This document shows positions 12,235 through 50,285 of a DNA stretch of 64,000 bases, piece by piece. The notes beneath the pieces were generated by a model that made no database searches, was not told where the DNA came from, and saw nothing but the letters and a program-made list of their open reading frames with translations. Source of the DNA: Histomonas meleagridis 2922-C6/04-290x (lineage: Eukaryota > Protista > Parabasalia); NCBI GenBank assembly GCA_020184695.1, contig JAANOX010000190.1, positions 124,001-188,000 on the forward strand. The letters run 5' to 3'. Position numbers and translations under genes: made by a program. The stretch's first letter is position 1. Every line of letters begins with the position of its first letter.

Positions 12235-15114
12235 ATGGATGATTATCACAAGAACCAGTACCTTCAAGACGTAATCAAATTCTTAGAAAATGAAAAAAGC
12301 ACGCGCATTCATGACGTTATTAAAAGCATCGAAAAATCATCTATTTCAGAAAAGATTTCAATGTATCAATTTTTATTTCAATATTTTTCTAAAGGATGTC
12401 CTCAACTAGAATGTCTTACTAAGTCAAAAAAAAGCACATTAATGTCTTTATTTAGTTATGTAATTTCCAAAATTCCACCATATTACTTTTATCCACAAAC
12501 ATTTGGTTTAGAGATTGGTTCCTGTCAGCAAAACTATTCCCTATATAGATGTTTTAAACCCACCATCCAACGCATTAAAAGAATCGAAAAAATGATACAA
12601 TCAATTTTTATTGATTCAGATTTATCACCATTTTCACCTGATTTTAAATTTTCCTTTACTGATCCTCAAATCCTCTTTGCCAAATCATCAGCTGATCTTA
12701 GTAATAATCTAATTTATCAAACACCAATAATCCAAGCCTTCAAGAAACATTTATTAAATTTATCAACCACCACTTCATTTCATCATCTATTAAAAACCCA
12801 AAATGGAAAAATGAATCTCACTTTAGCGATAATTGAAATTCTATCAGATCTTAATAAGGAACAAAATGCCACACAATGTCAACTTTTATTTTGTTTTTCC
12901 ATAGTTTTTTTATATGTCAACTCCTTTGCAACCACAAATGATATTGATGGCCAGACGCTTTGTTCGTACATCACATCTCAACCATTTATCTCACCATTTT
13001 GTTTATTTTCAATGATTAATCATATCTCTATCTTTATCCATTTGTTTAACTTGCTTATCCCGACCGAAATCTCCCAAAACTTGGAGCAACAAGCGGAAGT
13101 TCACCCGTCGCAATATGAACTTGTCGATCTATCGGTCGATTCACATTTTGATCCGTTTCTTAAACGTATCCCGACGATAGCGTCAAATTTTTTCCTGTCA
13201 AAAAATGCCACCAACAACGATGAAGAATTTGATTGTGCAGATGATAATGGGTTATTTTGTTTCTTGAATTTATCATCTACGCAATTATTAGGTAAAATGA
13301 AAGCAGTGTTAAGTTTAGCAAGAGAAATTAAACTTGGCCCAATTCATGTATCAGGAATGAACATAGCATTATTACGAATTATACGATTTTCTTTACAAAG
13401 AGCTATCATAGATTGTGAAGAATCCAAAATTGTCACACCGAAATTTTGTTATTTTTTGCAAAATATATTTTCAATATTATCAGTAAGTTTTTCCGAACAA
13501 ATATCACGGAAATTCTTTTCGTTACAAGAAATCAAATGGAATTCCTGTGTTTTAATTATTCGCTTAACATTATCAAATTTAATATTATGTGTATTACATC
13601 AAATTCCAGACCATAACTTTGTCTTATTTTGCTTAAAATGTTCCAACATGGTTGAAACTCAAGGGTATGCCAACTTATTAATTTTAAAGATATTTCCATA
13701 TACCAAATTTTATTTAATCCCAAATGTCATTGAAACTTTACCGGATAGTTTAGACTCATTTACAGAGCTTTTATTTCTCGAAGAATTCCGTAACATTAAG
13801 CAAGTATATTCATTTGAAGAATATCAAAAACTCAAGAACATTTACACCGAAATTCTCAAAAGAGGAAATTACAAAACAGACAACAAAGAGAAAGTATTAT
13901 TTCTTAGTAAAATGAAGCAAAACAAACCACTTCAACCAAACGAAGAGTTAAACAACACGATCAACTTAGCGTTAGAAGCTCAAACCATTCAAGAAGCATT
14001 TGATTTAATTCGAACGTGTAAAGTTTTTCATCAAGCAATGCATTTAATATATGGGTTATCATTAACACCATTTTTTAAAGATTATAACTTTGCCACGTTT
14101 TTAAACTCTGCGATCTTAAACTTTGTTAAATATACTCAGCCGACTGATCGCGAAGTCAAATTCTTTGAAATCAGTGAAAGTCAATACTCATTACCATTTG
14201 CGCAATTTCTTCTTAAGCGATTATTATTACAAGGGTATATTGATTTAGCGGACAAATTATTTAATGAGTTAATTGAGTCCATTAAAAATGATAAATGTGT
14301 ATTACATTGGATCACATTATTTCTAATTGATCATTTCCATTTAATTACAGATAACATAACGATTGGATTAAAGAATATATTAAAGTCATTACCATTATCA
14401 GATAAGTTTTATTTCCAAGATGATAATTTCATATATAATATATCACAATTATTAATCGAAAAAGAATTGCCATTAATTCGTGGGCCTTCTTTATTAGAAC
14501 GTGAATATATCTCTGAATATGAACATGTATATTCATTTGGTATATGTTCAATAACGTTATACTCAAAAGATCCCGAAAGAATTGCAAATTTATTAATAAG
14601 TCCAATTAATAATATTCGTTTTTCATGGAATAATAGAGATAAATCATTATATACTTTTGCAAAAATTGCTGCTGATTTACATCCAACTATTGGTATAATA
14701 TTCTTTAGAAAGTTATTAATGAAAAATATGGAAGTGACGATAACAAGCGGGAAAATATTTTTGATGTTTTGTGGATTTAAAACTTTCGCTGGTATTTGTG
14801 AGAAAATTGAGATGTTGACCGAGAAAAATAACACAAAAATTATTATGTTCTTGAAAATGATTTGTCCGTGCTATAAAAGATTGGTCGGAGATAAACAATT
14901 CGCAACAAAGTTTTTGTGTAACGTAATTAACTTGTCGAAATTCGTGGATGATAAAATCGAGTTGGAAACTGTGGTAGACGTCGTCTGTTTGCTGTGCGCA
15001 AAGCTGAAATTGGCCGAATTTAAAAACGAATTACTAAAAGCTGCAATGATCTTGCCGAATAAGGAAAAAGAACTCTTCGAGGCGGCAATGGAAATAGAAG
15101 CTGAATCATATTAA
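12235..15114 (+). CDS. Large helical hypothetical protein; C-terminal part resembles Mediator subunit MED23
   Basis: 959-aa intact ORF. LPFAQFLLKRLL and EREYISEYEHVYSFGICSITL...IANLL recall MED23 motifs (LPVFDIVIHRFLE; NEFPNPAAHALHVTCVELM...VGNALL). Judged by eye only. Confidence 0.4.
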   Translation: MDDYHKNQYLQDVIKFLENEKSTRIHDVIKSIEKSSISEKISMYQFLFQYFSKGCPQLECLTKSKKSTLMSLFSYVISKIPPYYFYPQTFGLEIGSCQQNYSLYRCFKPTIQRIKRIEKMIQSIFIDSDLSPFSPDFKFSFTDPQILFAKSSADLSNNLIYQTPIIQAFKKHLLNLSTTTSFHHLLKTQNGKMNLTLAIIEILSDLNKEQNATQCQLLFCFSIVFLYVNSFATTNDIDGQTLCSYITSQPFISPFCLFSMINHISIFIHLFNLLIPTEISQNLEQQAEVHPSQYELVDLSVDSHFDPFLKRIPTIASNFFLSKNATNNDEEFDCADDNGLFCFLNLSSTQLLGKMKAVLSLAREIKLGPIHVSGMNIALLRIIRFSLQRAIIDCEESKIVTPKFCYFLQNIFSILSVSFSEQISRKFFSLQEIKWNSCVLIIRLTLSNLILCVLHQIPDHNFVLFCLKCSNMVETQGYANLLILKIFPYTKFYLIPNVIETLPDSLDSFTELLFLEEFRNIKQVYSFEEYQKLKNIYTEILKRGNYKTDNKEKVLFLSKMKQNKPLQPNEELNNTINLALEAQTIQEAFDLIRTCKVFHQAMHLIYGLSLTPFFKDYNFATFLNSAILNFVKYTQPTDREVKFFEISESQYSLPFAQFLLKRLLLQGYIDLADKLFNELIESIKNDKCVLHWITLFLIDHFHLITDNITIGLKNILKSLPLSDKFYFQDDNFIYNISQLLIEKELPLIRGPSLLEREYISEYEHVYSFGICSITLYSKDPERIANLLISPINNIRFSWNNRDKSLYTFAKIAADLHPTIGIIFFRKLLMKNMEVTITSGKIFLMFCGFKTFAGICEKIEMLTEKNNTKIIMFLKMICPCYKRLVGDKQFATKFLCNVINLSKFVDDKIELETVVDVVCLLCAKLKLAEFKNELLKAAMILPNKEKELFEAAMEIEAESY

Positions 15115-15565
15115 TAAAATGTTTTGATTTGTTTTCTGTTGTTTTTAACTTGCAGAAATTCGTTGATGATAAAAATGAGTTAGAAATTGTTGTTAGCAAT
15201 GTTTGATGAAATGTTCAAAGTTAAAACTAATGACTTTAAAGACGAAATACTAAGTGCGGCAATAACTTTATCTTAAAAAAAGAAAAAAAATTGTTTGAAA
15301 CAGCTCTAAAAATAGAAGCTGAATCATATTAATAAAATGTTTTGAATTGTTTTCTGTTGTTTTTAACTTGCAGAAATTCGTTGGTGATAAAAATGAGTTT
15401 GAAAGTGTTATTGACGTTGTTTGTTTATTATGTTTCAAGTTGAAATAGCTAAGTTTAAAAACGAATTAGAAAATGAAACAAAAAATATACCTAAAAATTG
15501 AAAAAGAGTTGTTCGAAACAGCTCTGGAAATAGAATCTGAAATATATAACAAAATGTTTTTTATT
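14929..15565 (+). repeat. Three tandem ~218-bp copies of the gene's 3' end plus 3' flank
   Basis: AACTTG...GAAATTCGT unit starts at 14929, 15147 and 15365. Copies 2 and 3 are degenerate, with stops. Confidence 0.9.
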
Positions 15566-19697: not shown

Positions 19698-20663
19698 ATG
19701 CAATCAGAAAACATTGCAGAACTTGAAAAAATTCTTATGAACCAAAGCCACTTCGAAGAGCTTGTTTTTCATCTTAACGCAAGTAGCTTTGATGAAGCAA
19801 AGTCACTTCTTAATCAATATGATAAAATGTGGGTACAACAACTTATTGTCAAAGCACAAAATCCTCTTAATTACAAAGTCCTTGGTGACTTATTCGAACT
19901 TACAGGCAAGGCACAAATCAAATTTTCTTCAGATACTTCTTTCCATCAATATCTTTATGTTCGAGGTTTAATTACCCCCGATGACTTTCGCGACAAAGAA
20001 CTTCTACTTAGCAAAAGTCAATTGCCACCTGTTTCAACATTTGAAAATCCTATTATGAATGGTGAAATCGAGGACTACATTCAAAAGGATGACCTTCAAG
20101 GCTTTGTTGACTATGTTATTGCCAATAATGTTGATCTTCATGAAGAAGGTTTTCTACTTAATGATAGTTTGTTGGGCCTAATTGATTTTTGTTGTTATTG
20201 CAATTCAATTAATATTCTTAAATTTTTACTGGAAAACGATGTTGAAATTTATCCTGAAACCATTAATAGTGCAGTTGATGGTGGTTCTGAAGAAGTTATT
20301 TCATATCTTGAATCAATTGGAATTTCGTTTGATCAGACTATTATTCATGCAATTGCATTCCATCATAATAATATTGCTAAAACTCTTTTTAAGAAATATG
20401 AAAATAAAGGATTTAAGTTGTCGAGATGTGTTCAATGGTTTAACACTGAAATGTTAATTTACTTTATTAATGAATGTGATCTTGATGTGAATCAAGAAGA
20501 TAATGGAAAAAGAACATGTTTGCATTATGCTGTTTATAATAATGATCTGAATGTGGTTAATTATTTGCTGATAAAAGGAGCTGATAAAAATCTGGTGGAT
20601 GACAATGGGAATTCAGCGATGGATTTTGCAAGAACTGAAAAAATGAAGAATTTAATTAAGTAA
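19698..20663 (+). CDS. DUF3447-type ankyrin repeat protein
   Basis: LIDFCCYCNSINILKFL, AIAFHHNNI and an uninterrupted terminal ankyrin repeat DVNQEDNGKRTCLHYAV. Confidence 0.85.
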   Translation: MQSENIAELEKILMNQSHFEELVFHLNASSFDEAKSLLNQYDKMWVQQLIVKAQNPLNYKVLGDLFELTGKAQIKFSSDTSFHQYLYVRGLITPDDFRDKELLLSKSQLPPVSTFENPIMNGEIEDYIQKDDLQGFVDYVIANNVDLHEEGFLLNDSLLGLIDFCCYCNSINILKFLLENDVEIYPETINSAVDGGSEEVISYLESIGISFDQTIIHAIAFHHNNIAKTLFKKYENKGFKLSRCVQWFNTEMLIYFINECDLDVNQEDNGKRTCLHYAVYNNDLNVVNYLLIKGADKNLVDDNGNSAMDFARTEKMKNLIK

Positions 20664-20892
20664 AAAATTAATTAAGCTTCAAACTGTATTTTCTTTCTAA
20701 ATATTGGATTTTAAATATATTAATAATAACTTTACATAAAATGATAAATAAAAAAAGATATTAAAAAGAGAAAACATGCAAAAGAAAAAATTCTTTATAT
20801 AATAATTTCAAAGAAACAATTATAATATAATGAAAATATTTAATTCTTTATTTAAGATTTACTGTTTTATAATGTTTTTAGAAAGCTTTATT

Positions 20893-22350
20893 TTAATATC
20901 TAAATATCATCATCTGGATATTATCTTTCACCATTTGATCAACTTTTTCTTCTTCTGACATCGAACTGCTTTCTCTCTTTTTTCGAATCTGAATAGCAAT
21001 AACTATTATCACTACAATCAAAATAATTACAATTGGAACACACGCACCTATAGCAATTCCTATTATGTTTGATTGTGTAAATGTATTTGATTGAGCAAAT
21101 GAATTTGATTGTGTAAATGTATTTGATTGTGTAAATGTATTTGATTGTGTAAATGTATTTGATTTCGGTATTGTGCTTGATTTAGTAAATATATCAGACT
21201 TCGAAAATGTATTTGAACTGGAAAAAGATTTTGATTGTAAAAATGTTCTTGTATTTGAAATCGTATTTGATTGAGTAAAAGTAAGTGATGTTATGAATGA
21301 CCTTGTTGACCAAGGATCACAATCTTCAATTGTTGTTCCAATAGATACATTAAGCATACCGAATGATGTTGAATTATATGAATATAATGTCATAACATAT
21401 TGTGCAAAAATGCCAACAAATGCTGAGTAATGAATTATTGGCTCAGTCTGTCCATAAAAATAAATACATTTAAGAGAAACACATTCATAAAATGCATTTA
21501 TTCCAATTCTTTCTAAATTTTCTTCAAATATAACTTCTGATAGATTTAAACATTGCATGAAAGCAGAATCATAAATTGATGTTAACGCATAAGGAAATTT
21601 AATATTAAAAAGTGATTTACATTGAAAAAAACAATGTCCTCCAACTGTCGTAATATTTGTACCAAAAATAACATCTGATAATTTATAACACCCTTGAAAT
21701 GTTCTTTCATAAAGAGAAGTTATTAAATTTGGAATTCTTATTTTTTCGAGAGAAATACAAAAAATAAATGCGTAACTACCAATTGAAATTACATTTTCTC
21801 CTAGAATAATCTCAAATAATTTAGAACATCTTCCAAACGCTACTTCATTAATAGAGATTACTGAATTTGGAATTTTAATTTTTTCAATAAGCACACAAAC
21901 AGAAAATGCATATTCACCAATAGTTTTAACATTCTCACCAAAAATTATTTCAGTTAATTTGTTGCATCTTCCAAATGCTAAATCATCAATTAAAGTTACT
22001 GAATCTGGAATAACAATTTTTTCAAGAGATATGCAATTAAAAAATGAATAACTTCCAATAACTCTAAGATTTTTTCCAAAAATTACTTCTGTTAAGTTGA
22101 AACATTTCATAAATGCTGATTTATTAATGGAAATCACTGAATTACCAATTTCAGCAGAAAATAATTTTGGCCATTGATAGAAAGCTCGAAGTGGAATAAC
22201 AGTTATCCCATTTTCAATGATAACATATAATGTATCATTTGCATATTCTCTCGTAAATTCTTTAGGATCTCTTATTGTTAACCTTTTTGTTTCATCATTG
22301 AATTCTTCATGTGTATGTGTTAAAAATATCAACAACAAACAAACATTCAT
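20893..22350 (-). CDS. BspA-like TpLRR surface protein (signal peptide, LRR_5, (S/T)NTFTQ stalk, TM, short tail)
   Basis: IPxSVxxIxxxAFxxC repeats, a tandem 18-nt TQSNTF repeat at ~21065-21155 and a hydrophobic TM followed by RKKR. Confidence 0.92.
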   Translation of the reverse strand: MNVCLLLIFLTHTHEEFNDETKRLTIRDPKEFTREYANDTLYVIIENGITVIPLRAFYQWPKLFSAEIGNSVISINKSAFMKCFNLTEVIFGKNLRVIGSYSFFNCISLEKIVIPDSVTLIDDLAFGRCNKLTEIIFGENVKTIGEYAFSVCVLIEKIKIPNSVISINEVAFGRCSKLFEIILGENVISIGSYAFIFCISLEKIRIPNLITSLYERTFQGCYKLSDVIFGTNITTVGGHCFFQCKSLFNIKFPYALTSIYDSAFMQCLNLSEVIFEENLERIGINAFYECVSLKCIYFYGQTEPIIHYSAFVGIFAQYVMTLYSYNSTSFGMLNVSIGTTIEDCDPWSTRSFITSLTFTQSNTISNTRTFLQSKSFSSSNTFSKSDIFTKSSTIPKSNTFTQSNTFTQSNTFTQSNSFAQSNTFTQSNIIGIAIGACVPIVIILIVVIIVIAIQIRKKRESSSMSEEEKVDQMVKDNIQMMIFRY

Positions 22351-23119
22351 TTTTATGACAAAAAAATGATGTGAAGGATGATGAAAGTATTCAAATTTTG
22401 AAAGTCATAACAAAATTTGAGAGCATTTGTTCGAACAAATAGGATAAGAAAAAGTGAATGAGTAAATCATTAAATTTCGGGGCGTCCCATTAAATGATAA
22501 AGTTTTCAATATTGAATGACAATATAATAAACCATCAAAAAATTCTAGGAATGCATTCAGTGTTGTCATGATTGCCATTAATTGGTTTGAAATCAATTTT
22601 ACCATGATTAAAAATTATTTAAACTTTTCACTTCAACTTTGGATACATACTAGTCCACATAAAATAAAAATAATTATTCAAATGATGAAAAATGAATTCT
22701 TTCGAATGAATTCATTTGGACTTCATGCATAAAAAAGTTGATCAACAGGATATTAAACTCAATGGTTTCCATTACTTCTACGTAAAAACTTTTCGTATAA
22801 AAATTTGGAGTAAACATCTCTTTTTGACAGAAATTCAAAGCAAGGGCACCCTAATTCTACTTTTTCTTGTAAAATAAAGTTATCAATAAATTTGTAAATC
22901 AAACAAATTTCACTTATCCTGATCGTTTAGAAATTGATGTTTTGGTTTTGGAAATTTTTCTGTGTTGTTAAAATCAATTGTTTCTATCTTAATTTATCTC
23001 CAAAAATTTTTTTCTGAAATATTTATCATAAAAATAAGTAAAATATATATTTGAAAAATACATTTTTTTATTATTCAAAAATTCTTTTCGCGGGCTTTAT
23101 TAAACGGTTTCATTTGACA

Positions 23120-25237
23120 ATGAGTGAAGGGCAAATTTCTCTTTCTGATTACGAGACAGTCGAAGACGTTCCACATGTTCCAGGGAGCCATGGTCAATGT
23201 AGAATTGTTAAAAATGCCGACGGTGAATTATTTGTTGCCAAACAATTTACAATATTTGATCCCCTCATTGACGAAAATGATTATGAGCCTTTAATGAGAA
23301 AAATAATGAGCATTGACCATCCTTCACTTGTTAAGACCATTGGATATTCTTTAGAAAATCCTGATCCTTCCGATTTTTCTCCTCAACTTACTGTTATAAC
23401 CAAATATTATCCCAACGGATCCCTCGAAGCGATTTTAAATCGTGCTGCTAATGGTGAAAATGTTGAAAAATGGAATAATACAACAAAAGATAAAATAATC
23501 GTTGGCCTTTCCAAAGCATTAAAGTTCTTACATAGCCGTGACATAATACATGGCTGTCTTAAGCCAACCAATGTTCTTTTTAACGAAAACTTCGAACCCG
23601 TAATATCAGATTATGGTTATTCGAGCTATTTCCCAAACAATTTCTCTACAGCTGATCTAGAGTCCATTGGTAACAGTATAAACTATCTTCCAAGAGACAT
23701 TTTTAGTGGAGAATTCTTTGATAATCAAAAAGCTGTGGATATATATGCACTTGGTCTAATTATACATGAAATTGTCACAGGAAATCGTCTCTTTGAAGGT
23801 AGTAGCCTTACACTTAAGCTTCCAAAGATCAAAGAAGGATTTGATCTTGATTTAAATTCATGTCCCGAAACACTCAAGCCATTAATTTCCACTTGTATCA
23901 AATCCGAAAATGAGCGGCCAGCTATTGAACAAATAGACAAGAAACTTACTGAATCATCCAATGCACTTTTACCTGATATTGATCAATCAATAATTTCCGA
24001 ATATGTTAATTCAATTACAACGTATGAAAATAATCTTATTCAAGCGCAAATTTTATCGCCGAAGAAACTATCGCCAGAGCGCACGCAGCCATTCAAGAAC
24101 ATCAAAGCCGGAATTTCTGACACATCAAATATTGAACGAAGTAAACATTACAATTCTCTATCGGAGGAAGCACGTCAACTTTTAGATGCAAGTTCAAGCG
24201 GCGACACCAAACTATATAACCTTATCTCACTCTTATTTTATAAAGGTAATGAAGGTTTTCCACAAGATTATGAAGAAGCCCTTCGTTACGCCAAATTATC
24301 CGCATATAATAATGACTCAACAGGAATGCATATTTATGCATGTTATTTAAGTAATGGTATAGGAGGACCACGAAACATGAAAGTTGCAAGCGATATGTTT
24401 AAGAAATCTGCAGATTCATCAACATCTAATATAAATTCAATATTAGCATATGCTTATATGCGAGAAAAAGGTTATGGAAGCGAATTTCCAAATTATTCAC
24501 AAGCACAAGAATATTATAAACGCGCTGCAGATATGGGTAATGTTGAAGCTAAATTCCATTACTTTAGGATTCAACGTAGAAGCCAATTAACAAAAGAAGA
24601 TGTATTAAACATTAAAGAAGCCGCAGACAATGGAATTATTGATGCACAAGTACAATATGGTTATTGTTTAATGAAAGGCATTGGTGTGGATAAAGATGAA
24701 ACAGAGTCAGTGAAATATTATCAAATGGCAATAGAAGGAAATTCACCTTCAAGTGATGCGTTTTGTAATTTAGGTTATTTCTATCAAAATGGTATCGGCG
24801 GCTTAGAAAAAGATTATGAAAAAGCCGTTGAATACTATAAAAAAGCCGCTGAAATGAATAACCCTATCGGCGTTGTAAACTATGGAATTATGCTGCGGTT
24901 AGGATTGGGCGTGGAGAAAAATGAAGAAGATTCAACCGAGTTGTTCAAGAAGGCTGCTGACATGAAAAACACAGCTGGAATGTACTACTATGGTTATGCT
25001 TTATGCAAAGGTATTGGAGTCAAAGTTGATCAAAGAGTTGGTGTGGAATATTTTAGACAAGCTGCAGATGACAAGAATCCTTTTGTTAAAGCAGTGTACG
25101 CATATGGTTATGTACTCGAAAATGGTATTGGTGGAGTGAAAAAGGATATTAAAGAAGCTGATAGATATTATGGAAGAGCGGTAAAAATGGGTTATGAATT
25201 GGCTAACGAAGCACTCAAAAGAATTAGAGGGAAATAA
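23120..25237 (+). CDS. TKL-like (pseudo)kinase fused to SEL1/TPR repeats
   Basis: ATG at 23120 after Inr-like TCATTT. Kinase fold with HGCLKPTN (no catalytic Asp) and SDYG; multiple YYxxAAxxG SEL1 repeats. Confidence 0.9.
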   Translation: MSEGQISLSDYETVEDVPHVPGSHGQCRIVKNADGELFVAKQFTIFDPLIDENDYEPLMRKIMSIDHPSLVKTIGYSLENPDPSDFSPQLTVITKYYPNGSLEAILNRAANGENVEKWNNTTKDKIIVGLSKALKFLHSRDIIHGCLKPTNVLFNENFEPVISDYGYSSYFPNNFSTADLESIGNSINYLPRDIFSGEFFDNQKAVDIYALGLIIHEIVTGNRLFEGSSLTLKLPKIKEGFDLDLNSCPETLKPLISTCIKSENERPAIEQIDKKLTESSNALLPDIDQSIISEYVNSITTYENNLIQAQILSPKKLSPERTQPFKNIKAGISDTSNIERSKHYNSLSEEARQLLDASSSGDTKLYNLISLLFYKGNEGFPQDYEEALRYAKLSAYNNDSTGMHIYACYLSNGIGGPRNMKVASDMFKKSADSSTSNINSILAYAYMREKGYGSEFPNYSQAQEYYKRAADMGNVEAKFHYFRIQRRSQLTKEDVLNIKEAADNGIIDAQVQYGYCLMKGIGVDKDETESVKYYQMAIEGNSPSSDAFCNLGYFYQNGIGGLEKDYEKAVEYYKKAAEMNNPIGVVNYGIMLRLGLGVEKNEEDSTELFKKAADMKNTAGMYYYGYALCKGIGVKVDQRVGVEYFRQAADDKNPFVKAVYAYGYVLENGIGGVKKDIKEADRYYGRAVKMGYELANEALKRIRGK

Positions 25238-25499
25238 GTCTAAAAAATGATTTATGTAACTGTTTTTTGTACTTGGGTTTGCGATTCAATGTAACTGTTT
25301 TTTGAATTCGATTTAATCGTCATAAATTCTATCGTACTATGATTTTTGTGAACAAAATCATTCATCATTGAAAGATGCATATGAAACAGCAATACAATTT
25401 CATAGAAATGATATTTTTATATATCTTTATGAAAACAAAATTGGAAAAATTAATAATTTAACTGGATTAGGAATTAAATGTATTTTATATTATAATTAT

Positions 25500-25978
25500 G
25501 ATTTTTAAAATTAGTATTTGGAAATTATTTTAAATTTTTAAAACAGCACTTATGAATGCTGTTAAAAATGGTAATATCGAAATAGTTAAATTACTTCTTA
25601 AACAAAATAGAATCAATATCAATATTAAAGATATCTATTTGTCTTATTTAATATTTTTATCATTAACTTAATGTTTTAATTTAATATTTGGTGAATATTT
25701 AAATTATGTCATACGGCACTAACATGTGCATCTTTAAATGGTAATACAGAAATAGTTAAATTGCTTTTTAAACAAGAAGGAATTAATATCAATGCCAAAG
25801 ACATTTGTTTGTTTTATTTAATATTTATTCGAATAATTTAATGTTTTATAGTAATATTTGGAAATTATTCAAAATATTTGAGACGGCACTGATGTTTGCA
25901 TCAGAAAAAGGTTATACAGATATAGTTCAATTGCTTCTTGAACAAAAAGGAACTGATATTAATATTCAAAATATTTAA
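25500..25978 (+). repeat. Three ankyrin-repeat units with exact 170-nt period, separated by 77-nt frame-breaking spacers
   Basis: TAL codons start at 25543, 25713 and 25883. Each unit is 31 open codons (e.g. TALMFASEKGYTDIVQLLLEQKGTDINIQNI). Confidence 0.9.
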
Positions 25979-26722
25979 TTTTTTTGTTTAAAATTTATAT
26001 AAAAATCTTGGATTTAAAAATTAAATTTGGAATATATATATATAAATTATTTAAAATAGTAAAATATTACTTGTGAAAATGTTCAGATATTATCATTTGC
26101 TTCATATCGTATAATTAATAAAAATGGTCAGAGCTAGGTCTGATTTTTACATTTTTTAAATGATTATTTGAATATTTTAGAATCATACTTTTCTTGTTTA
26201 CGAATGTTTGGCTCTTAATATCTAAATCATATACCAAAAAATAAAATAATTTATAATACATCGTTTTTCCAAATCAATCAATTGTTGGATCTTTATTTGA
26301 GCTCAAAGGATTCTTGTTATATAAATATAATAGGAATTTTAGCGAATTCTATATTCTTTAATGAAAAACTTTTTTATAGGAAAATAACACTCATTTTGAA
26401 AATATGATTTTTTTCGAAAAACAGAATCCATTCGGAAATTCATATAAAAATATTTTTTCGGCATTAATTCTCCAAAAAAAAAAAAAAATTAAATTCTGTT
26501 GGGAAATTCTTTTGTTTACGGGAAAAAATTCATTCCAAATCGCTTATAGCTTTCGAAAATCGTATATCGTTCGCAATTTGGATAACAATATTAATATTCA
26601 ATTTATTAAAAATGTTGTGACTAGCACTTTAATATTTCTTCAACAAGTGGCTGTGTATTTATATTTTCGAGTAATGAAACTTCAAATATTTTGTATTCAC
26701 AACCTTACAAATGCAATTTACA

Positions 26723-27075
26723 TTACTCTTTTACATCATCTAATGTAAAAAATTTTCCATACGTTTTATCGCATTTGTTATTGTATACAACAATAAATTG
26801 AGGTCTTTCACCAGTTTTAAGATGTTCATCGACTAACTCAAATGTTTTGAAACAATTTGATTGGTTAGGACTGAGAACAATAATTATCTTATCCGCACCA
26901 CGGAGATACAAAACATAAAGCATAAAACACTTTTCATCTGCTGATATGTCCCATAAGTCAAGATGTTTTAATAATGTTAAGCAAAACTCTATTGGTTGGA
27001 GTATAATCACCATGCTTAGTGCCTAATAAAATTTCATTAAGGGTTGTTTTACCTGTGATGCCAGCATTTGATATT
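26723..27075 (-). pseudogene. Ras-superfamily small GTPase relic
   Basis: Degenerate AGITGKTT, YTPT, LWDISA, YLRGAD and NKCD across frameshifts. Confidence 0.65.
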
Positions 27076-27361
27076 TTTCTTGTGTTCAATTTTTTCTTCT
27101 GAATAACTGGCTAATCCTGTGTGGCCCATATACTTTCCTCAACGGCCTCTTACAACGTAGGGCCCATCACGTGAGAACGAATTTTATGTACGATTGATTT
27201 TGACTAAAAATTCGGCAATTGTTAGACGATCAAAAAGCACCGAAAAAGCCATTTCATCATGGTTAATAATATGAAAAAGTAAATCTTTTTGAAATGAAAA
27301 AGTCGGCTCCTCTCAAAATGTTTAGTTGAACTGTCAATTGACAGTTCGATTGTATTTTCAA

Positions 27362-28501
27362 ATGTTTTTTCTCCTTATTGTTTGTTCTTTATCAGATTTC
27401 CAACGTATTGATTTCATAAGAGGTCATGATGATGAATGCAAACCTGAAATACACGAAGAAGAATTGAAGAAAGAATGCACAAGGAAATCATCTGAAGTTT
27501 TTTGTGATAATTATATCAAATATTATGAAGTATTAAACGAAAATACTGTTTGCGAAATTGATTATTCAAAGCTCTCAAAGATTGAGAGTTTGGTAAAATC
27601 GGATTTTGTTTCAATATTTCCAGTGAGCTCATATTCGGAGGAAATTGGTAACTTTTCAAGTATATCTGGAAAGCATCGTGTGTGGATTGGATCTTCTAAT
27701 GGTTTCTTTGCCAGTGCTGATGTTTCAAATTCAATTCCACTTCTTGTTTTTGAAGGGTCAGGCTATAACTTTAAAGGGAAATTCAAGGGCGATCACATAG
27801 TATTTTATGATCCTTATTCTTATTCATTTGACATAAGTGATATTGAAGCAAATCATATTTATAGCAATGATCTTTCTCTAGTTAAAGCATCTAATGCAAA
27901 AGAAAAAACATACATTGTACAATCGCTCAAAAAGATTGTAGTTAGCGACGATACTTATACAATACACACTTCAGGAGGACCCACGGATACATTATCATCA
28001 GATATTTCGATTATGGTAAGTCCATATGCCGAATCATCATATAACATTGAAATTGAACAAGAAAAAGGAATAAATTCTGCGAAAACACTTAAAATATTAT
28101 TTGAAGAACCAGAAATCGCATTTAATTCTAATCTTTATGGTAATTCATATATAGTTTTTAAAGGAGGAAAAGTTAAAGATATTGACAAACTCATTGAAGC
28201 AAAAGTTGGATTTGATTTTAAAGGTGATTGGGATAATTTAAAGGATTTTAAGTTGGATTTAACAACTTATACATCAAGTAAAGATAAAATCGATACTTCT
28301 GGCATTCCGAATTCTGTTTCATATGAAATAAAAGAAGATGAAACATTTGGGAAAGCGGCTGATGATGGCGATGGATTATCGAAAGGTATGATAGCTGTCA
28401 TTGTCGTAGTCGTTGTTGTTGTTGTAATTATTGTTGTTGTCATTATTATCGTTGTCATTAAAAAGAAGAAGAAGAATGCTCAAGTTAAAAACCTTGAATA
28501 A
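27362..28501 (+). CDS. Type I membrane protein of unknown function
   Basis: Signal-like MFFLLIVCSLS, a Val/Ile TM and a KKKKK stop-transfer at the C-terminus. Confidence 0.85.
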   Translation: MFFLLIVCSLSDFQRIDFIRGHDDECKPEIHEEELKKECTRKSSEVFCDNYIKYYEVLNENTVCEIDYSKLSKIESLVKSDFVSIFPVSSYSEEIGNFSSISGKHRVWIGSSNGFFASADVSNSIPLLVFEGSGYNFKGKFKGDHIVFYDPYSYSFDISDIEANHIYSNDLSLVKASNAKEKTYIVQSLKKIVVSDDTYTIHTSGGPTDTLSSDISIMVSPYAESSYNIEIEQEKGINSAKTLKILFEEPEIAFNSNLYGNSYIVFKGGKVKDIDKLIEAKVGFDFKGDWDNLKDFKLDLTTYTSSKDKIDTSGIPNSVSYEIKEDETFGKAADDGDGLSKGMIAVIVVVVVVVVIIVVVIIIVVIKKKKKNAQVKNLE

Positions 28502-28734
28502 AAACTGTTTCATTTTAATTGTTAAGAAAAAAGATAGTAAATTCTAAATTGTACATCAAGTAAATGGAAAATGTCTTAAAATTCGGATATTTTTGATAGA
28601 ATTGTATATGTCCCGAATAATAAGTTCGAATGGAAAAAAATGTGTTGGGTAAAACACGATTCACAAATTGTTGATTCTTTGAAATTTATTTTAAATGTTT
28701 TTTATTGATTGAAGTGATGTAATAAATGTTTTAA

Positions 28735-36476: not shown

Positions 36477-36756
36477 AGGTGCCTTTTTACTCTCACATTT
36501 TAAATTAATAAAGATACTTAACGATATATTTTTTTTTTTTAAATTATCAAACAATCACATATTAAAAACATGTTGGCAAGAGGTTATAATTTGAAATGAT
36601 GCATTCTTGAAAATTCGAAATCCATTAATATATTTTAATAATATATTTTAAGATAAAAATTAAATTTCAGAAACATTTTTATGCTAAAAAGCAATCAAAT
36701 AAATTTGAGTTTTATATGAATTGCTTTTTGTAAATGTATAATAATTTTTATTTGAT

Positions 36757-37370
36757 TGTTTGAATGCGTGTTTTAATGGAATACATTCAAAAATTTCTGC
36801 ATATCACACAGAAATAGTTAAATTACTTAATGATCAAAAAAGAATTGATATTAATGCTAAAAATATTCATTTTTTTTTATTTAATATTTATTTTAATAAT
36901 TTGATGTTTCAAAATAATATTCGGAATTTATTTAAATTATTTAATACAGCACTTATTTATGCATCTAAAAGAGGGAATATAGAAATATTTAAATTACTCC
37001 TTAAACATAAAGGAATTGATATTAATTTTAAAAATATTTTTTTGTTTTATTTATTATTTATTTTAATAATTTGATTTTTCAAAATAATATTTGGAAATTA
37101 CTTAAATCATTAAAAACAGCACTTATGATTGCAGCTGAAAATTATAAAACAGAAATGGTTTAATATTACTTATTGAGCAAAAAGGAATTAATATTAATTT
37201 TAAAGATATTTATTTGTTTTATTTAATACCTATTTTAATAATTAAAAACTTCCAAAATCGTCTTTGGAAAATATTCAAATTATTTGAAACACATCTTACA
37301 ATTGCATCTAAACGAGGTCATACAAAAATAATTAAAATGCTTATTAAACAAAAAAAGATTCAAAATTAAT
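36757..37370 (+). repeat. Four degenerate ankyrin/spacer units (170-173-nt period)
   Basis: TAL/THL codons at 36946, 37116 and 37289 with the same spacer family. One spacer was shifted into frame by a T-run change, giving the 104-aa ORF 36760-37074. Confidence 0.85.
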
Positions 37371-37622
37371 TTTTCAAGGAGATAATGCTAATCCAAAAAT
37401 ATTTATTTATTTTAATAATTTGATATTTCAAGCATTACTTCAAATGGAATTTCGAAATAAGCACATTAATCTACTTCTTAAAAAAGGTGTTGAATTTCAT
37501 GAATAAACTTTTCAACTAATCTAAATTTTTATAAAATCAAAAGGTTAACATGATATTTTTAGGGATTTCAAGCAATAACATTAGCACGAAAATTAAACGT
37601 ATTCGGGCTGCCCTGTAAATTG

Positions 37623-46288: not shown

Positions 46289-47845
46289 ATGAATGGATCA
46301 GGGCCGATGCTTGGCCCATATGCACTCATTGGGAAATTGGGCCAAGGAACAAGTGGGCAAGTTAGACTTGCAGTTAATGTAGAAACTAAACAAAAAGTTG
46401 CAATTAAGATTATTAACAAAGAAATTTTCGCATCAAAGCCAAATTTACAAGTAAAAGTTCAGAGAGAAATTGCATTGATGAATCTTGCAGATCACCCACA
46501 TTTGTTAAAACTACTAGACGTTTTGGAATCTCCTCGACATCTTTACATTGTCGTTGAATACGCAGCTAAAGGTGAATTATTCAACTTTTTAGTAGAACAC
46601 AAGTCGCTTGATGAAGGAATGGCAATGAAATTTTTCAGACAAATCATTTATGGATTAGAATACCTTCACTCTCTTGGAATTTGCCACCGAGACTTAAAAC
46701 CAGAAAATATTCTTTTAGATGAAAATCTAAACATAAAAATTGCTGATTTCGGTTTTGCCAGATTTGTGAAATATAGCATTGCCGAAACATCATGTGGTTC
46801 ACCACATTATGCAGCACCAGAAGTCATTGCAGGTCATCCATATGATGGACGAATGGCTGATGTCTGGAGTTGTGGTGTAATTTTATATGCATTATTAGCA
46901 GTATGTTTTTCCAAGTGCCAGCAAAATTGCGGCGCTTGTATTCAGGATTCTAACACATAGGGTTATCTTCCATTTGATGATAAGTCCATTCGTGGTCTTC
47001 TCACCAAAGTTAAAAGAGGTGTATATCAAATGCCTAATTTCTCGGAACCAGCCAAAGACTTTATTTCGAAGATCCTCGTCCTTGACCCATCTAAGCGCCT
47101 TACGATTCCTGGCATGAAGATGCATCCATTTTTCAGAATTAACCTCCCATCGGAGTACGTTATCCCGACACCGTTACCGATTCCGTCACTTTTGGCGCCG
47201 ATAGACCTGTCGACGGTTAATCCCGGGGTTCTTGATGTGCTTCGAAAAATCGGCTGTTCCAATGATGAAGAGCTTTTTGCAGATCTCACATCTAACCAGC
47301 ACACTATGGCTAAAGTTTTTTGTTATATGCTTGCATCAAAACTCTCATTAGAACAAATAGATTGGAGTCAATCTATGAGTAACTCATTTAACGCACAGAC
47401 AGAAAACGAAGATGTTTATACTTTAAATGCATTGAACTCATATTCTGGATCGTATAATGATCCATTTCAATTCCAAAACCAATCAGTCGATTTTGCAACA
47501 TCAGTGGCACATAGAGCAGATTGGGTTCTTGGATCGTCAGAAGAACAAGTTGAAGACATACAAAAGTTCAGCATTATTGCAAATATGTCACGCGTTTATG
47601 CTCTTTTAGCAATGCAAAGATTAATGCGCCAGCTTGACATGCAGTGGTTCCACTCAGATGATTTTGTGATAATTGCGCGAAGAGAGCCCACGTACATCCT
47701 CATCCGCTGTATTGACATGGATGATGAAAAAGTGACAGTTTACATTCAGTGCATTAACGGTCCCGGCGAATTCTTCTCTCACATTTGTCATGCGGCAGAT
47801 GATATTATTAACCAGATGAATATGAGCAATTGGTATTGCAATTAA
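46289..47845 (+). CDS. CAMK-group kinase (BRSK/SAD/Gin4-like), two exons: 46289-46900 and 46961-47845
   Basis: Splicing 46901-46960 restores ...YALLA|GYLPFDD... and joins the two annotated ORFs. Confidence 0.93.
46901..46960 (+). other. 60-nt spliceosomal intron (trichomonad type)
   Basis: 5' GTATGT; fused branch point/3' site TTCTAACACATAG matches the trichomonad RCTAACACACAG consensus. Phase 0; the terminal TAG is an in-frame stop if the intron is retained. Confidence 0.92.
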
Positions 47846-49932: not shown

Positions 49933-49989
49933 TAAATAAACGAATTTACTGTAATTCTTTGATTTTTTGTGATATAATGAAATTACTTT

Positions 49990-50285
49990 ATAACAAAATT
50001 TGGAGTTTTATATCAATCGAAATCGCTCACTGTGTTCTTACAATATTACCATTAATGAATAATCAAATCTAACAACAAAATAGTTTAATAGCAAAACTTG
50101 CTGAAGTCATCTTCATAACAAAATTTGGAGTTTAATATAAAAGAAGTCGCTCATTATGTTCTTACAATATGAATATTAATGAATAATCAAATCTAACAAC
50201 GCAACAATTTAATAGCAAAACTTGCTGAAGTCATCTTCACAACAAAATTTGGAGTTTAATATAAAAGAAGGCGCTCATTATGTTC
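49990..50285 (+). repeat. ~125-bp tandem repeat, 2.4 copies
   Basis: A(T/C)AACAAAATTTGGAGTTT starts at 49990, 50115 and 50239. Confidence 0.9.

Follow-up and report, generated by a model that had tools for sequence, protein, structure and literature searches.

This report concerns a short array of ankyrin-like units, hereafter array 1, and the 17-nucleotide (nt) sequences that interrupt it, in a 64-kb window of the Histomonas meleagridis genome (contig JAANOX010000190.1). The window has about 30% G+C and carries long intronless open reading frames (ORFs); coordinates below refer to it unless another locus is named, and the arrays, the family fragment and the intron described here lie on its forward strand. 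Array 1 consists of three ankyrin-like units of 31 open codons each, starting at 25543, 25713 and 25883, with an exact period of 170 nt (Tandem Repeats Finder: period 170, 2.4 copies, 78% matches, 0 indels), separated by AT-rich spacers of 77 nt each (25636-25712 and 25806-25882). This layout had been described in a first-pass annotation made from the sequence alone, and both the coordinates and the repeat analysis bore it out. Within the window, spacer sequence recurred above expectation, with 5 matches to a 21-mer at up to 3 mismatches (0.25 expected) and 14 matches to a 17-mer (5.6 expected).

The Pfam Ank profile (PF00023) was used with the following criteria: a 33-residue repeat, a G-x-T-[AP]-L hairpin and helices of the form ...V/I-x-x-L-L... 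The ankyrin exons passed its gathering cut-off of 21.1 with 28.9-34.0 bits and matched profile positions 4-32 of 33 only, indicating that the hairpin residues are absent from the units. The first-pass annotation had already noted the lack of the x-G-x residues there; they are nevertheless encoded, as codons inside the spacer. Read on a grid, the 77-nt spacer resolves into D/N, 17 nt, codon, 17 nt, codon, 17 nt, GGN, 17 nt and codon-TAL. It thus holds four 17-nt inserts kept apart by three single codons, and the grid codons provide the x-G-x that PF00023 requires ahead of TAL.

The array opens with a DUF3447-like N-terminal piece (25362-25502, SSLKDAYETAIQFHRNDIF...YNYD), which is open, has no in-frame ATG and comes into frame with the ankyrin units only once two inserts are removed. 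Just two inserts stand ahead of unit 1, in the order D, a c-type insert (25503-25519), the single-codon exon GGA for glycine (25520-25522), a d-type insert (25523-25539) and AAA-ACA-GCA. Ankyrin exon 1 (25540-25632, K + TALMNAVKNGNIEIVKLLLKQNRININIKD; 33.6 bits, profile positions 4-32 of 33) closes with D and is followed by four inserts (25633-25649, 25653-25669, 25673-25689 and 25693-25709) enclosing the codons AAT (25650-25652), AAT (25670-25672) and GGT (25690-25692), which are predicted from the grid parse only, and then by CAT-ACG-GCA (H-T-A). After exon 2 (25710-25802, H + TALTCASLNGNTEIVKLLFKQEGININAKD), which also matches the Pfam profile, the inserts at 25803-25819, 25823-25839, 25843-25859 and 25863-25879 enclose AAT (25820-25822), AAT (25840-25842) and GGA (25860-25862) and lead into GAG-ACG-GCA. 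Exon 3 (25880-25978, E + TALMFASEKGYTDIVQLLLEQKGTDINIQNI) ends in the stop codon TAA (25976-25978), and a further decayed loop may start at 25973.

Removal of the ten inserts places the whole of 25362-25978 in a single frame, from the N-terminal piece through the three repeats to the stop at 25976, and the restored loops KD-NNGH-TAL and KD-NNGE-TAL are standard D-x-x-G-x-T-A-L ankyrin hairpins. The TAATG overlaps that the first-pass annotation had pointed out at 25669 and 25839, with the ATG 42 nt upstream of TAL, are indeed present; on the grid each contains an AAT codon followed by the initial G of the next insert. The N-terminal piece corresponds to an internal part of full-length family genes, the first ATG of the array is located inside exon 1, and array 1 is probably a 5'-truncated member of its family.

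RNA contigs across the second loop

The RNA data consisted of assembled Logan contigs; five runs of one 2023 study contain parts of both the array described above and a second one (array 2, see below), and the contigs of four runs were mapped to 22900-28600. Exon 2 was matched from 25728 or 25736 to 25803 with 0 mismatches, and exon 3 from 25880 to 25952 or 25974. Two contigs from different runs spanned the loop between exons 2 and 3: record 9 of run X2 (170 nt, depth 14) lay on 25737-25803 and 25880-25974, and record 18 of run X3 (153 nt, depth 9) on 25736-25803 and 25880-25952 with 0 mismatches, in both cases with 8 letters between the two parts. Record 3 of run X1 (100 nt) lay on 25728-25803 and continued with 24 unplaced letters. 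Eight letters therefore stand in place of 76 genomic bases, a net loss of 68 nt, or 4 x 17. A gapped RNA alignment lacking 68, 71, 74 or 77 nt was what the first-pass annotation had predicted for an undescribed non-canonical intron, and the first of these sizes was found, at one junction.

The ends of the contigs coincide with the grid prediction for this loop, namely GAC + A, then ATAATGGA, then GAG. The left match breaks at 25803 because the A of AAT, the next mature letter after GAC, matches the genomic base at that position, and on the right the grid places GAG at 25880 directly after GGA; the full predicted joined form is GAC plus 9 letters (AAT AAT GGA) plus GAGACGGCA. The 8 retained letters adjoin neither flank, and among regular grids with 3-nt exons, only one with four inserts (n=4) of 17 nt (L=17) fits an 80-nt loop that loses 68 nt. 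In the same runs, contigs of paralogues read without interruption through D-K-D-G-K-T-A-L, D-K-H-G-K-T-A-L and D-E-C-G-Y-T-A-L.

Coverage of the neighbouring genes was limited in a way that indicates that the runs behave like RNA. The kinase-Sel1 gene upstream of array 1 is covered from about 23115-23132 to 25259, some 20 nt beyond its stop codon, at a depth of about 80; the gene downstream is covered as well, and neither X2 nor X3 has a contig on 26147-26528. The depth of the array 1 contigs is about one tenth to one fifth of that of the neighbour gene. Array 1 is thus transcribed at a low level and processed, the contig evidence being that of one junction, and the processing of a truncated array indicates that it is independent of an intact ORF.

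Two side observations were made in this neighbourhood. An X1 contig of the kinase-Sel1 gene (from 23115) reaches 25432, past the usual end at 25259, with 445 further letters unplaced, which could mean that transcription continues into the ankyrin fragment or that the assembly graph was joined there. Besides, 26082-27290 is matched by contigs in several runs and holds no ORF of at least 150 amino acids; it may correspond to an unannotated transcript or a short gene.

The 17-nt grid at other loci

Three other H. meleagridis loci were reached via proteins of the same genome and a metagenome DNA scaffold via a homologue search; of the 43-Mb genome, about 130 kb was inspected. All four loci carry split ankyrin repeats, again at a period of about 170 nt, and together with the window they gave a set of 18 junctions containing 73 inserts, 70 of them exactly 17 nt long and 3 of 18 nt, the latter at T runs. 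There is no stop among the 75 retained codons, against 7.2% stop triplets within the inserts (P ~0.004). A G codon occupies the position two codons ahead of T/S in 15 of the 18 loops, and the retained codons, mainly G, N, K, D and E, are purine-rich (0.75 vs 0.37 in the inserts). Loops with 2, 3, 4, 5 and 7 inserts are all built from 17-nt modules. In a gap-free alignment of six units, the pairwise identity of the inserts was 0.75 vs 0.60 for exon third positions, and conservation within the exons followed the order second > first > third position, which is a coding pattern.

One of these loci (L003, JAANOX010000253.1) holds two genes whose inserts are of quite different sequence and mostly start with GT but keep the same grid, with loops reading DRGK, NDGN, NQGE, NNGN, QHGW and WRGW. 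Its gene B (20632-22286 of that contig), an unannotated DUF3447+ankyrin gene, is uninterrupted over its first 388 codons, and its last three repeats are split by 11 inserts, with two of the micro-exons measuring 6 nt (TTTGAC and TGGAGA); without the 11 inserts it becomes a DUF3447+ankyrin ORF of 488 amino acids ending at a stop codon. A second locus (L002, JAANOX010000095.1) has loops with five and seven inserts. In its seven-insert loops (130-270 and 363-500), 6 of the 7 inserts share one sequence, the 17-mer ATATGTTTTAATAATTT, whereas the intervening triplets differ (GGA AAA TAT GGA TAT AAA GAA); if single-codon exons were optional in these loops, the frame would be preserved. On the metagenome scaffold (European Nucleotide Archive ERZ28614869, scaffold_48083, 1557-2098), the insert types follow each other as a-b-c-d, in the window's order and on the same 170-nt grid, and the loops read NYGK, NDGK and NWDK. 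The protein called there, P0275, ends in ...KDV* inside the first insert, showing that automatic annotation truncates such genes. Stretches homologous to the 25362-25502 piece of array 1 are present both in L003 gene B and in P0275.

The kinase-Sel1 neighbour of array 1 is also encoded on contig WSYJ01000149.1 of GCA_020186115.1, the hybrid Oxford Nanopore and Illumina genome of Palmieri et al. 2021, with 28.7% G+C (PMC8529796). That paper describes introns as scarce and makes no mention of ankyrin proteins (PMC8529796). Two genome assemblies and a separate metagenome DNA assembly all contain the inserts; this rules out an assembly artefact.

The window itself holds further relatives of array 1. 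A second array of 170-nt units (array 2, about 36776-37373; 36808-37373 as repeat, 3.3 copies), recognised by its period and grid parse, has loops reading NDGN, IDGK and NKGE on the grid and two 18-nt inserts at T runs, while its ankyrin parts contain indels, a frameshift and stops; it reads as a decayed copy, for which the product-less satellite proposed among the first-pass hypotheses is a fair description. A family fragment at about 1783-1880 consists of GGA, a 17-nt insert, AAT and TALIYASEKGYTEIVKLLLEQE and then breaks off. Finally, an uninterrupted DUF3447+ankyrin gene of 321 amino acids (19698-20663) lies 5 kb upstream of the split copy, so that ankyrin loops are not all split, and split and unsplit members coexist. 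Two unrelated tandem repeats were also recorded in the window, at 15092-15560 (218 nt, 2.2 copies, 81% matches) and 49986-50285 (124 nt, 2.4 copies, 90%).

Searches beyond the ankyrin loci were negative. No insert chain was detected outside them in the ~130 kb inspected when a position weight matrix was applied on a 20-nt grid, and single inserts restoring long ORFs in non-ankyrin genes showed no excess over 14- and 20-nt controls; our claim is accordingly confined to ankyrin loops. The insert system is that of the H. meleagridis DUF3447+ankyrin gene family. In Tritrichomonas foetus, the gene of a homologue (P0276) is contiguous; it is not a close orthologue and has little bearing on the distribution of the inserts. 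A protein search with the 45-amino acid read-through ORF (25841-25975) gave no match, and an exhaustive search of representative proteins with exon 3 was uninformative, all its matches being giant generic ankyrin proteins in order of repeat number. The N-terminal ORF of L003 gene B, which has no interruptions, retrieved no mature transcript-derived protein, only truncated metagenome calls, through which the metagenome scaffold described above was reached; a degenerate pattern of GGN, d-type insert and TAL had 0 matches in Joint Genome Institute metagenome contigs, and an Rfam scan of the whole window found no family.

Insert sequences and known intervening elements

The inserts have the consensus RTTTNTTTNAANNATTT. 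They start with AT (35/73) or GT (27/73; either, 62/73), the first base being a purine in 68 of 70, and they typically end in TTT, with TT in 60/73 and AG in 1/73. The body is U-rich, and A is common at positions 10-11 (-8/-7) and 14 (-4), as in ACTAACACACAG. Shifting the borders by 1 nt in either direction, where the sequence allows it, never produced AG at the 3' end. The CTAAC branch motif is absent from all 73 inserts and present in a canonical parabasalid-type intron of a kinase gene in the window (46900-46960, GTATGT...TCTAACACATAG; 61 nt, phase 0), whose removal joins the reading ...LLA to GYLPFDD; this is the real intron that the first-pass annotation had cited at 46901. As for the U12 AT-AC type, the ATATCC 5' site, the TCCTTAAC branch and the AC end were not found, 0 of the 73 inserts ending in AC. 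RNA folds of four loops with their flanks gave z values from -1.25 to +0.82 vs shuffled sequences and no common structure, so that a structure-guided model was set aside. With no AG, no CTAAC and no significant fold, every known intron class fails on the features tested. What the inserts do share with introns is their absence from RNA, observed for 25803-25879 in the X2 and X3 contigs, the single junction tested.

The nearest known elements in size are ultra-short spliceosomal introns, which measure 15-16 nt in Stentor coeruleus, 18-21 nt in the Bigelowiella natans nucleomorph and 23-25 nt in type B introns of Trichomonas vaginalis (PMC12316389). The inserts resemble them in their very small and almost constant size, their richness in T/U and their removal from RNA. 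Parabasalid introns, moreover, have a branch A whose short distance to the 3' end is fixed (PMC12316389), and A is frequent at -8/-7 and -4 of the inserts. They depart from these introns in their ends, which in ultra-short spliceosomal introns are GT...AG, and in the lack of the parabasalid CTAAC. None of the known ultra-short classes occurs in runs of 2-7 separated by 3-nt exons, as the inserts do.

Other intervening elements share some of these properties. The non-canonical introns of Fritillaria borealis and Oikopleura and the nonconventional introns of euglenids lack GT-AG, are removed from nuclear mRNA and are numerous and lineage-specific; their sizes are variable and much larger, and the euglenid ones depend on pairing of the intron ends, whereas the H. 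meleagridis inserts are fixed at 17 nt, surround single-codon exons and show no significant fold. Micro-exons of animals and plants (1-27 nt) lie between long canonical introns that carry enhancer elements; the H. meleagridis exons are likewise in frame and as small as 3 nt, but their flanking inserts measure 17 nt and several follow in series. The byps of Magnusiomyces capitatus mitochondria and the insert of T4 gene 60 are 27-55-nt sequences that are kept in mRNA and skipped by the ribosome; ours are also short inserts within coding sequence, but they are absent from the RNA. Ciliate internal eliminated sequences, which are bounded by TA, at least 26 nt long and removed from DNA in the somatic nucleus, are comparable as short AT-rich interruptions of coding sequence that are precisely excised; the H. 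meleagridis inserts, however, have RT...TT rather than TA at their ends and are present in all three DNA assemblies seen, and we know of no split between germline and soma in this organism. Full-text literature searches retrieved no description of such inserts in parabasalids or elsewhere.

Probable excision of 17-nt sequences and its alternatives

We consider it probable that the ankyrin hairpin loops of this family contain 17-nt intervening sequences that are present in DNA and are each precisely removed from RNA. The 77-nt spacer would then be four separate intervening sequences within the β-hairpin loop, with single codons for the loop residues standing between them (D, 17, N, 17, N, 17, G, 17, x-TAL), and their removal would turn each 170-nt genomic unit into a 102-nt ankyrin repeat of 34 codons. 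The first-pass hypothesis of an undescribed non-canonical intron class is thereby favoured, the RNA lacking 68 nt, although in the form of four 17-nt inserts and not of one 77-nt spacer. That each piece is removed separately and the intervening codons kept is inferred from the modular loops of 2-7 inserts, the sole GG position of the spacer and the hairpin consensus of the paralogue RNAs.

Several points weigh against this interpretation. The RNA evidence consists of one junction, in contigs and not raw reads, at low depth (9-18), from runs that carry the label 'RNA?', and the contigs give the number and not the identity of the 8 retained letters, which we infer to be ATAATGGA. The insert-bearing DNA form is known from assemblies, and the joined form from RNA-run contigs. 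Run X6 contains 0.49 of the sampled words of array 2 (36700-37520), more than the exons alone could give, and may include unprocessed RNA, or DNA carry-over, of that decayed array. In array 1, exon 1 is not preceded by an in-frame ATG, the paralogues behind the junction counts are non-independent samples, and the mature protein of the split genes was not found in the protein collections searched. Two loops also fit poorly: that at L003:21796 reads HHFDL, with no G, and an L002 loop with all its triplets kept would read GKYGYKE, over-long for a standard hairpin. Added to the lack of a common fold, we know of no machinery that removes 17-nt segments devoid of AG and flanked by 3-nt exons.

As to the agent, our best guess is a spliceosome-derived ruler, acting serially on one insert after another and derived from the very short, T-rich parabasalid introns with their fixed branch distance. 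This preference stems from three features that recall the short introns of Trichomonas, namely a start of purine plus T, a U-rich sequence and A at -8/-7 and -4, and it is perhaps evenly balanced against a non-spliceosomal cut-and-ligate system. A fuller version of the latter is a tentative possibility. It assumes a length-measuring excision, cut-and-ligate or guide-directed and specific to this parabasalid lineage, and a choice among the single codons that would vary the target-binding loops of a large ankyrin family combinatorially; the idea of a choice draws on the preservation of the frame whichever single-codon exons are kept and on the near-identical inserts and variable triplets of L002.

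Separate removal of the 17-nt pieces has also to be weighed against their removal in larger blocks. It is unlikely that the spacer is cut as one or two larger non-canonical introns, with the 9 retained letters coming from other positions. The contigs do give a net length only (68 nt lost, 8 unplaced letters), and in loop 2->3 the AATAAT at 25832-25837 could supply the same six letters (29+22+17); loop 1->2, however, has no AATAAT, and a single 68-nt cut beside an exon is excluded, as the retained letters touch neither flank. Moreover, only 17-nt modules account for the L002 repeats of 20 nt and for loops of 2, 3, 5 and 7 inserts, and the paralogue RNAs need a G two codons before T, the sole GG of the spacer being located 17 nt before the next exon.

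That the joined form exists as DNA, either a processed retrocopy or the result of programmed or somatic deletion, and is merely transcribed, appears improbable. The genome has been inspected only to the extent given above, which leaves room for such a copy, but the contigs agree with the locus over 141 nt (0 mismatches), against a divergence of 20-28% between paralogous units, and the inserts are found in both genome assemblies and in the metagenome DNA scaffold. A retrocopy would itself require prior removal at the RNA level, and to our knowledge there is no nuclear dualism in parabasalids. The genome is, in addition, reported to be repeat-poor (PMC8529796).

Very improbable, in our judgement, is a decaying ankyrin-derived tandem repeat with neither processing nor product, in which the grid codons would be coincidental. 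The degraded state of array 2 and of the 1.8-kb fragment, the N-terminal piece of array 1 devoid of a start codon and the frequency of AAT triplets in AT-rich DNA all suit it. Against it stand the absence of the inserts from the RNA-run contigs, the coding-type conservation of the exons, the lack of stops in 75 grid codons and the correct placement of GGN in 15/18 loops across families with diverged inserts, and the 488-amino acid ORF restored in L003. A non-coding satellite was likewise rejected for array 1, since this array is transcribed and processed and its exons are conserved in the coding order.

We attach still less probability to an artefact, be it de Bruijn chimeras between paralogues or template switching by reverse transcriptase. 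The family is huge in the RNA runs, with thousands of contigs on 25574-25955, and the informative contigs are those of low depth noted above; yet identical junction ends were obtained in the independent runs X2 and X3, with the same left end in X1, and both flanks are identical to the array 1 locus, unlike the paralogues. Template switching needs direct repeats, which are absent at the insert borders, and neither kind of artefact yields four exact deletions that keep the frame and recreate the consensus hairpin of an ankyrin repeat. Translational recoding with the spacer kept in the mRNA (termination-reinitiation, frameshifting or bypassing; the first-pass annotation had put forward termination-reinitiation or -1 recoding as a source of ~57-residue peptides, from the stop/ATG overlap and the ATG in frame with the next unit) has almost nothing left to commend it and was rejected, as the RNA contigs lack the spacer, TAATG results from an AAT codon next to an insert that has G as its first letter and is lacking in other families where the grid persists, and insert sequence accounts for the MFQNNIWKLF-type reading.

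In our best reading the inserts are undescribed intervening sequences that are excised from RNA, and the chance that their mechanism is of a new kind is substantial. If confirmed at the read level, they would be among the shortest intervening sequences known and apparently the first that, with neither GT-AG ends nor recognisable structure, occur in series around single-codon exons. They would offer a handle on the minimal information needed for RNA excision, here a fixed 17 nt, a purine start and a UUU end, and they bear on the origin and spread of introns within a repeat family. Gene callers stop in the first insert, so that a large protein family of this poultry pathogen is probably missing from, or truncated in, annotation and proteomic databases.

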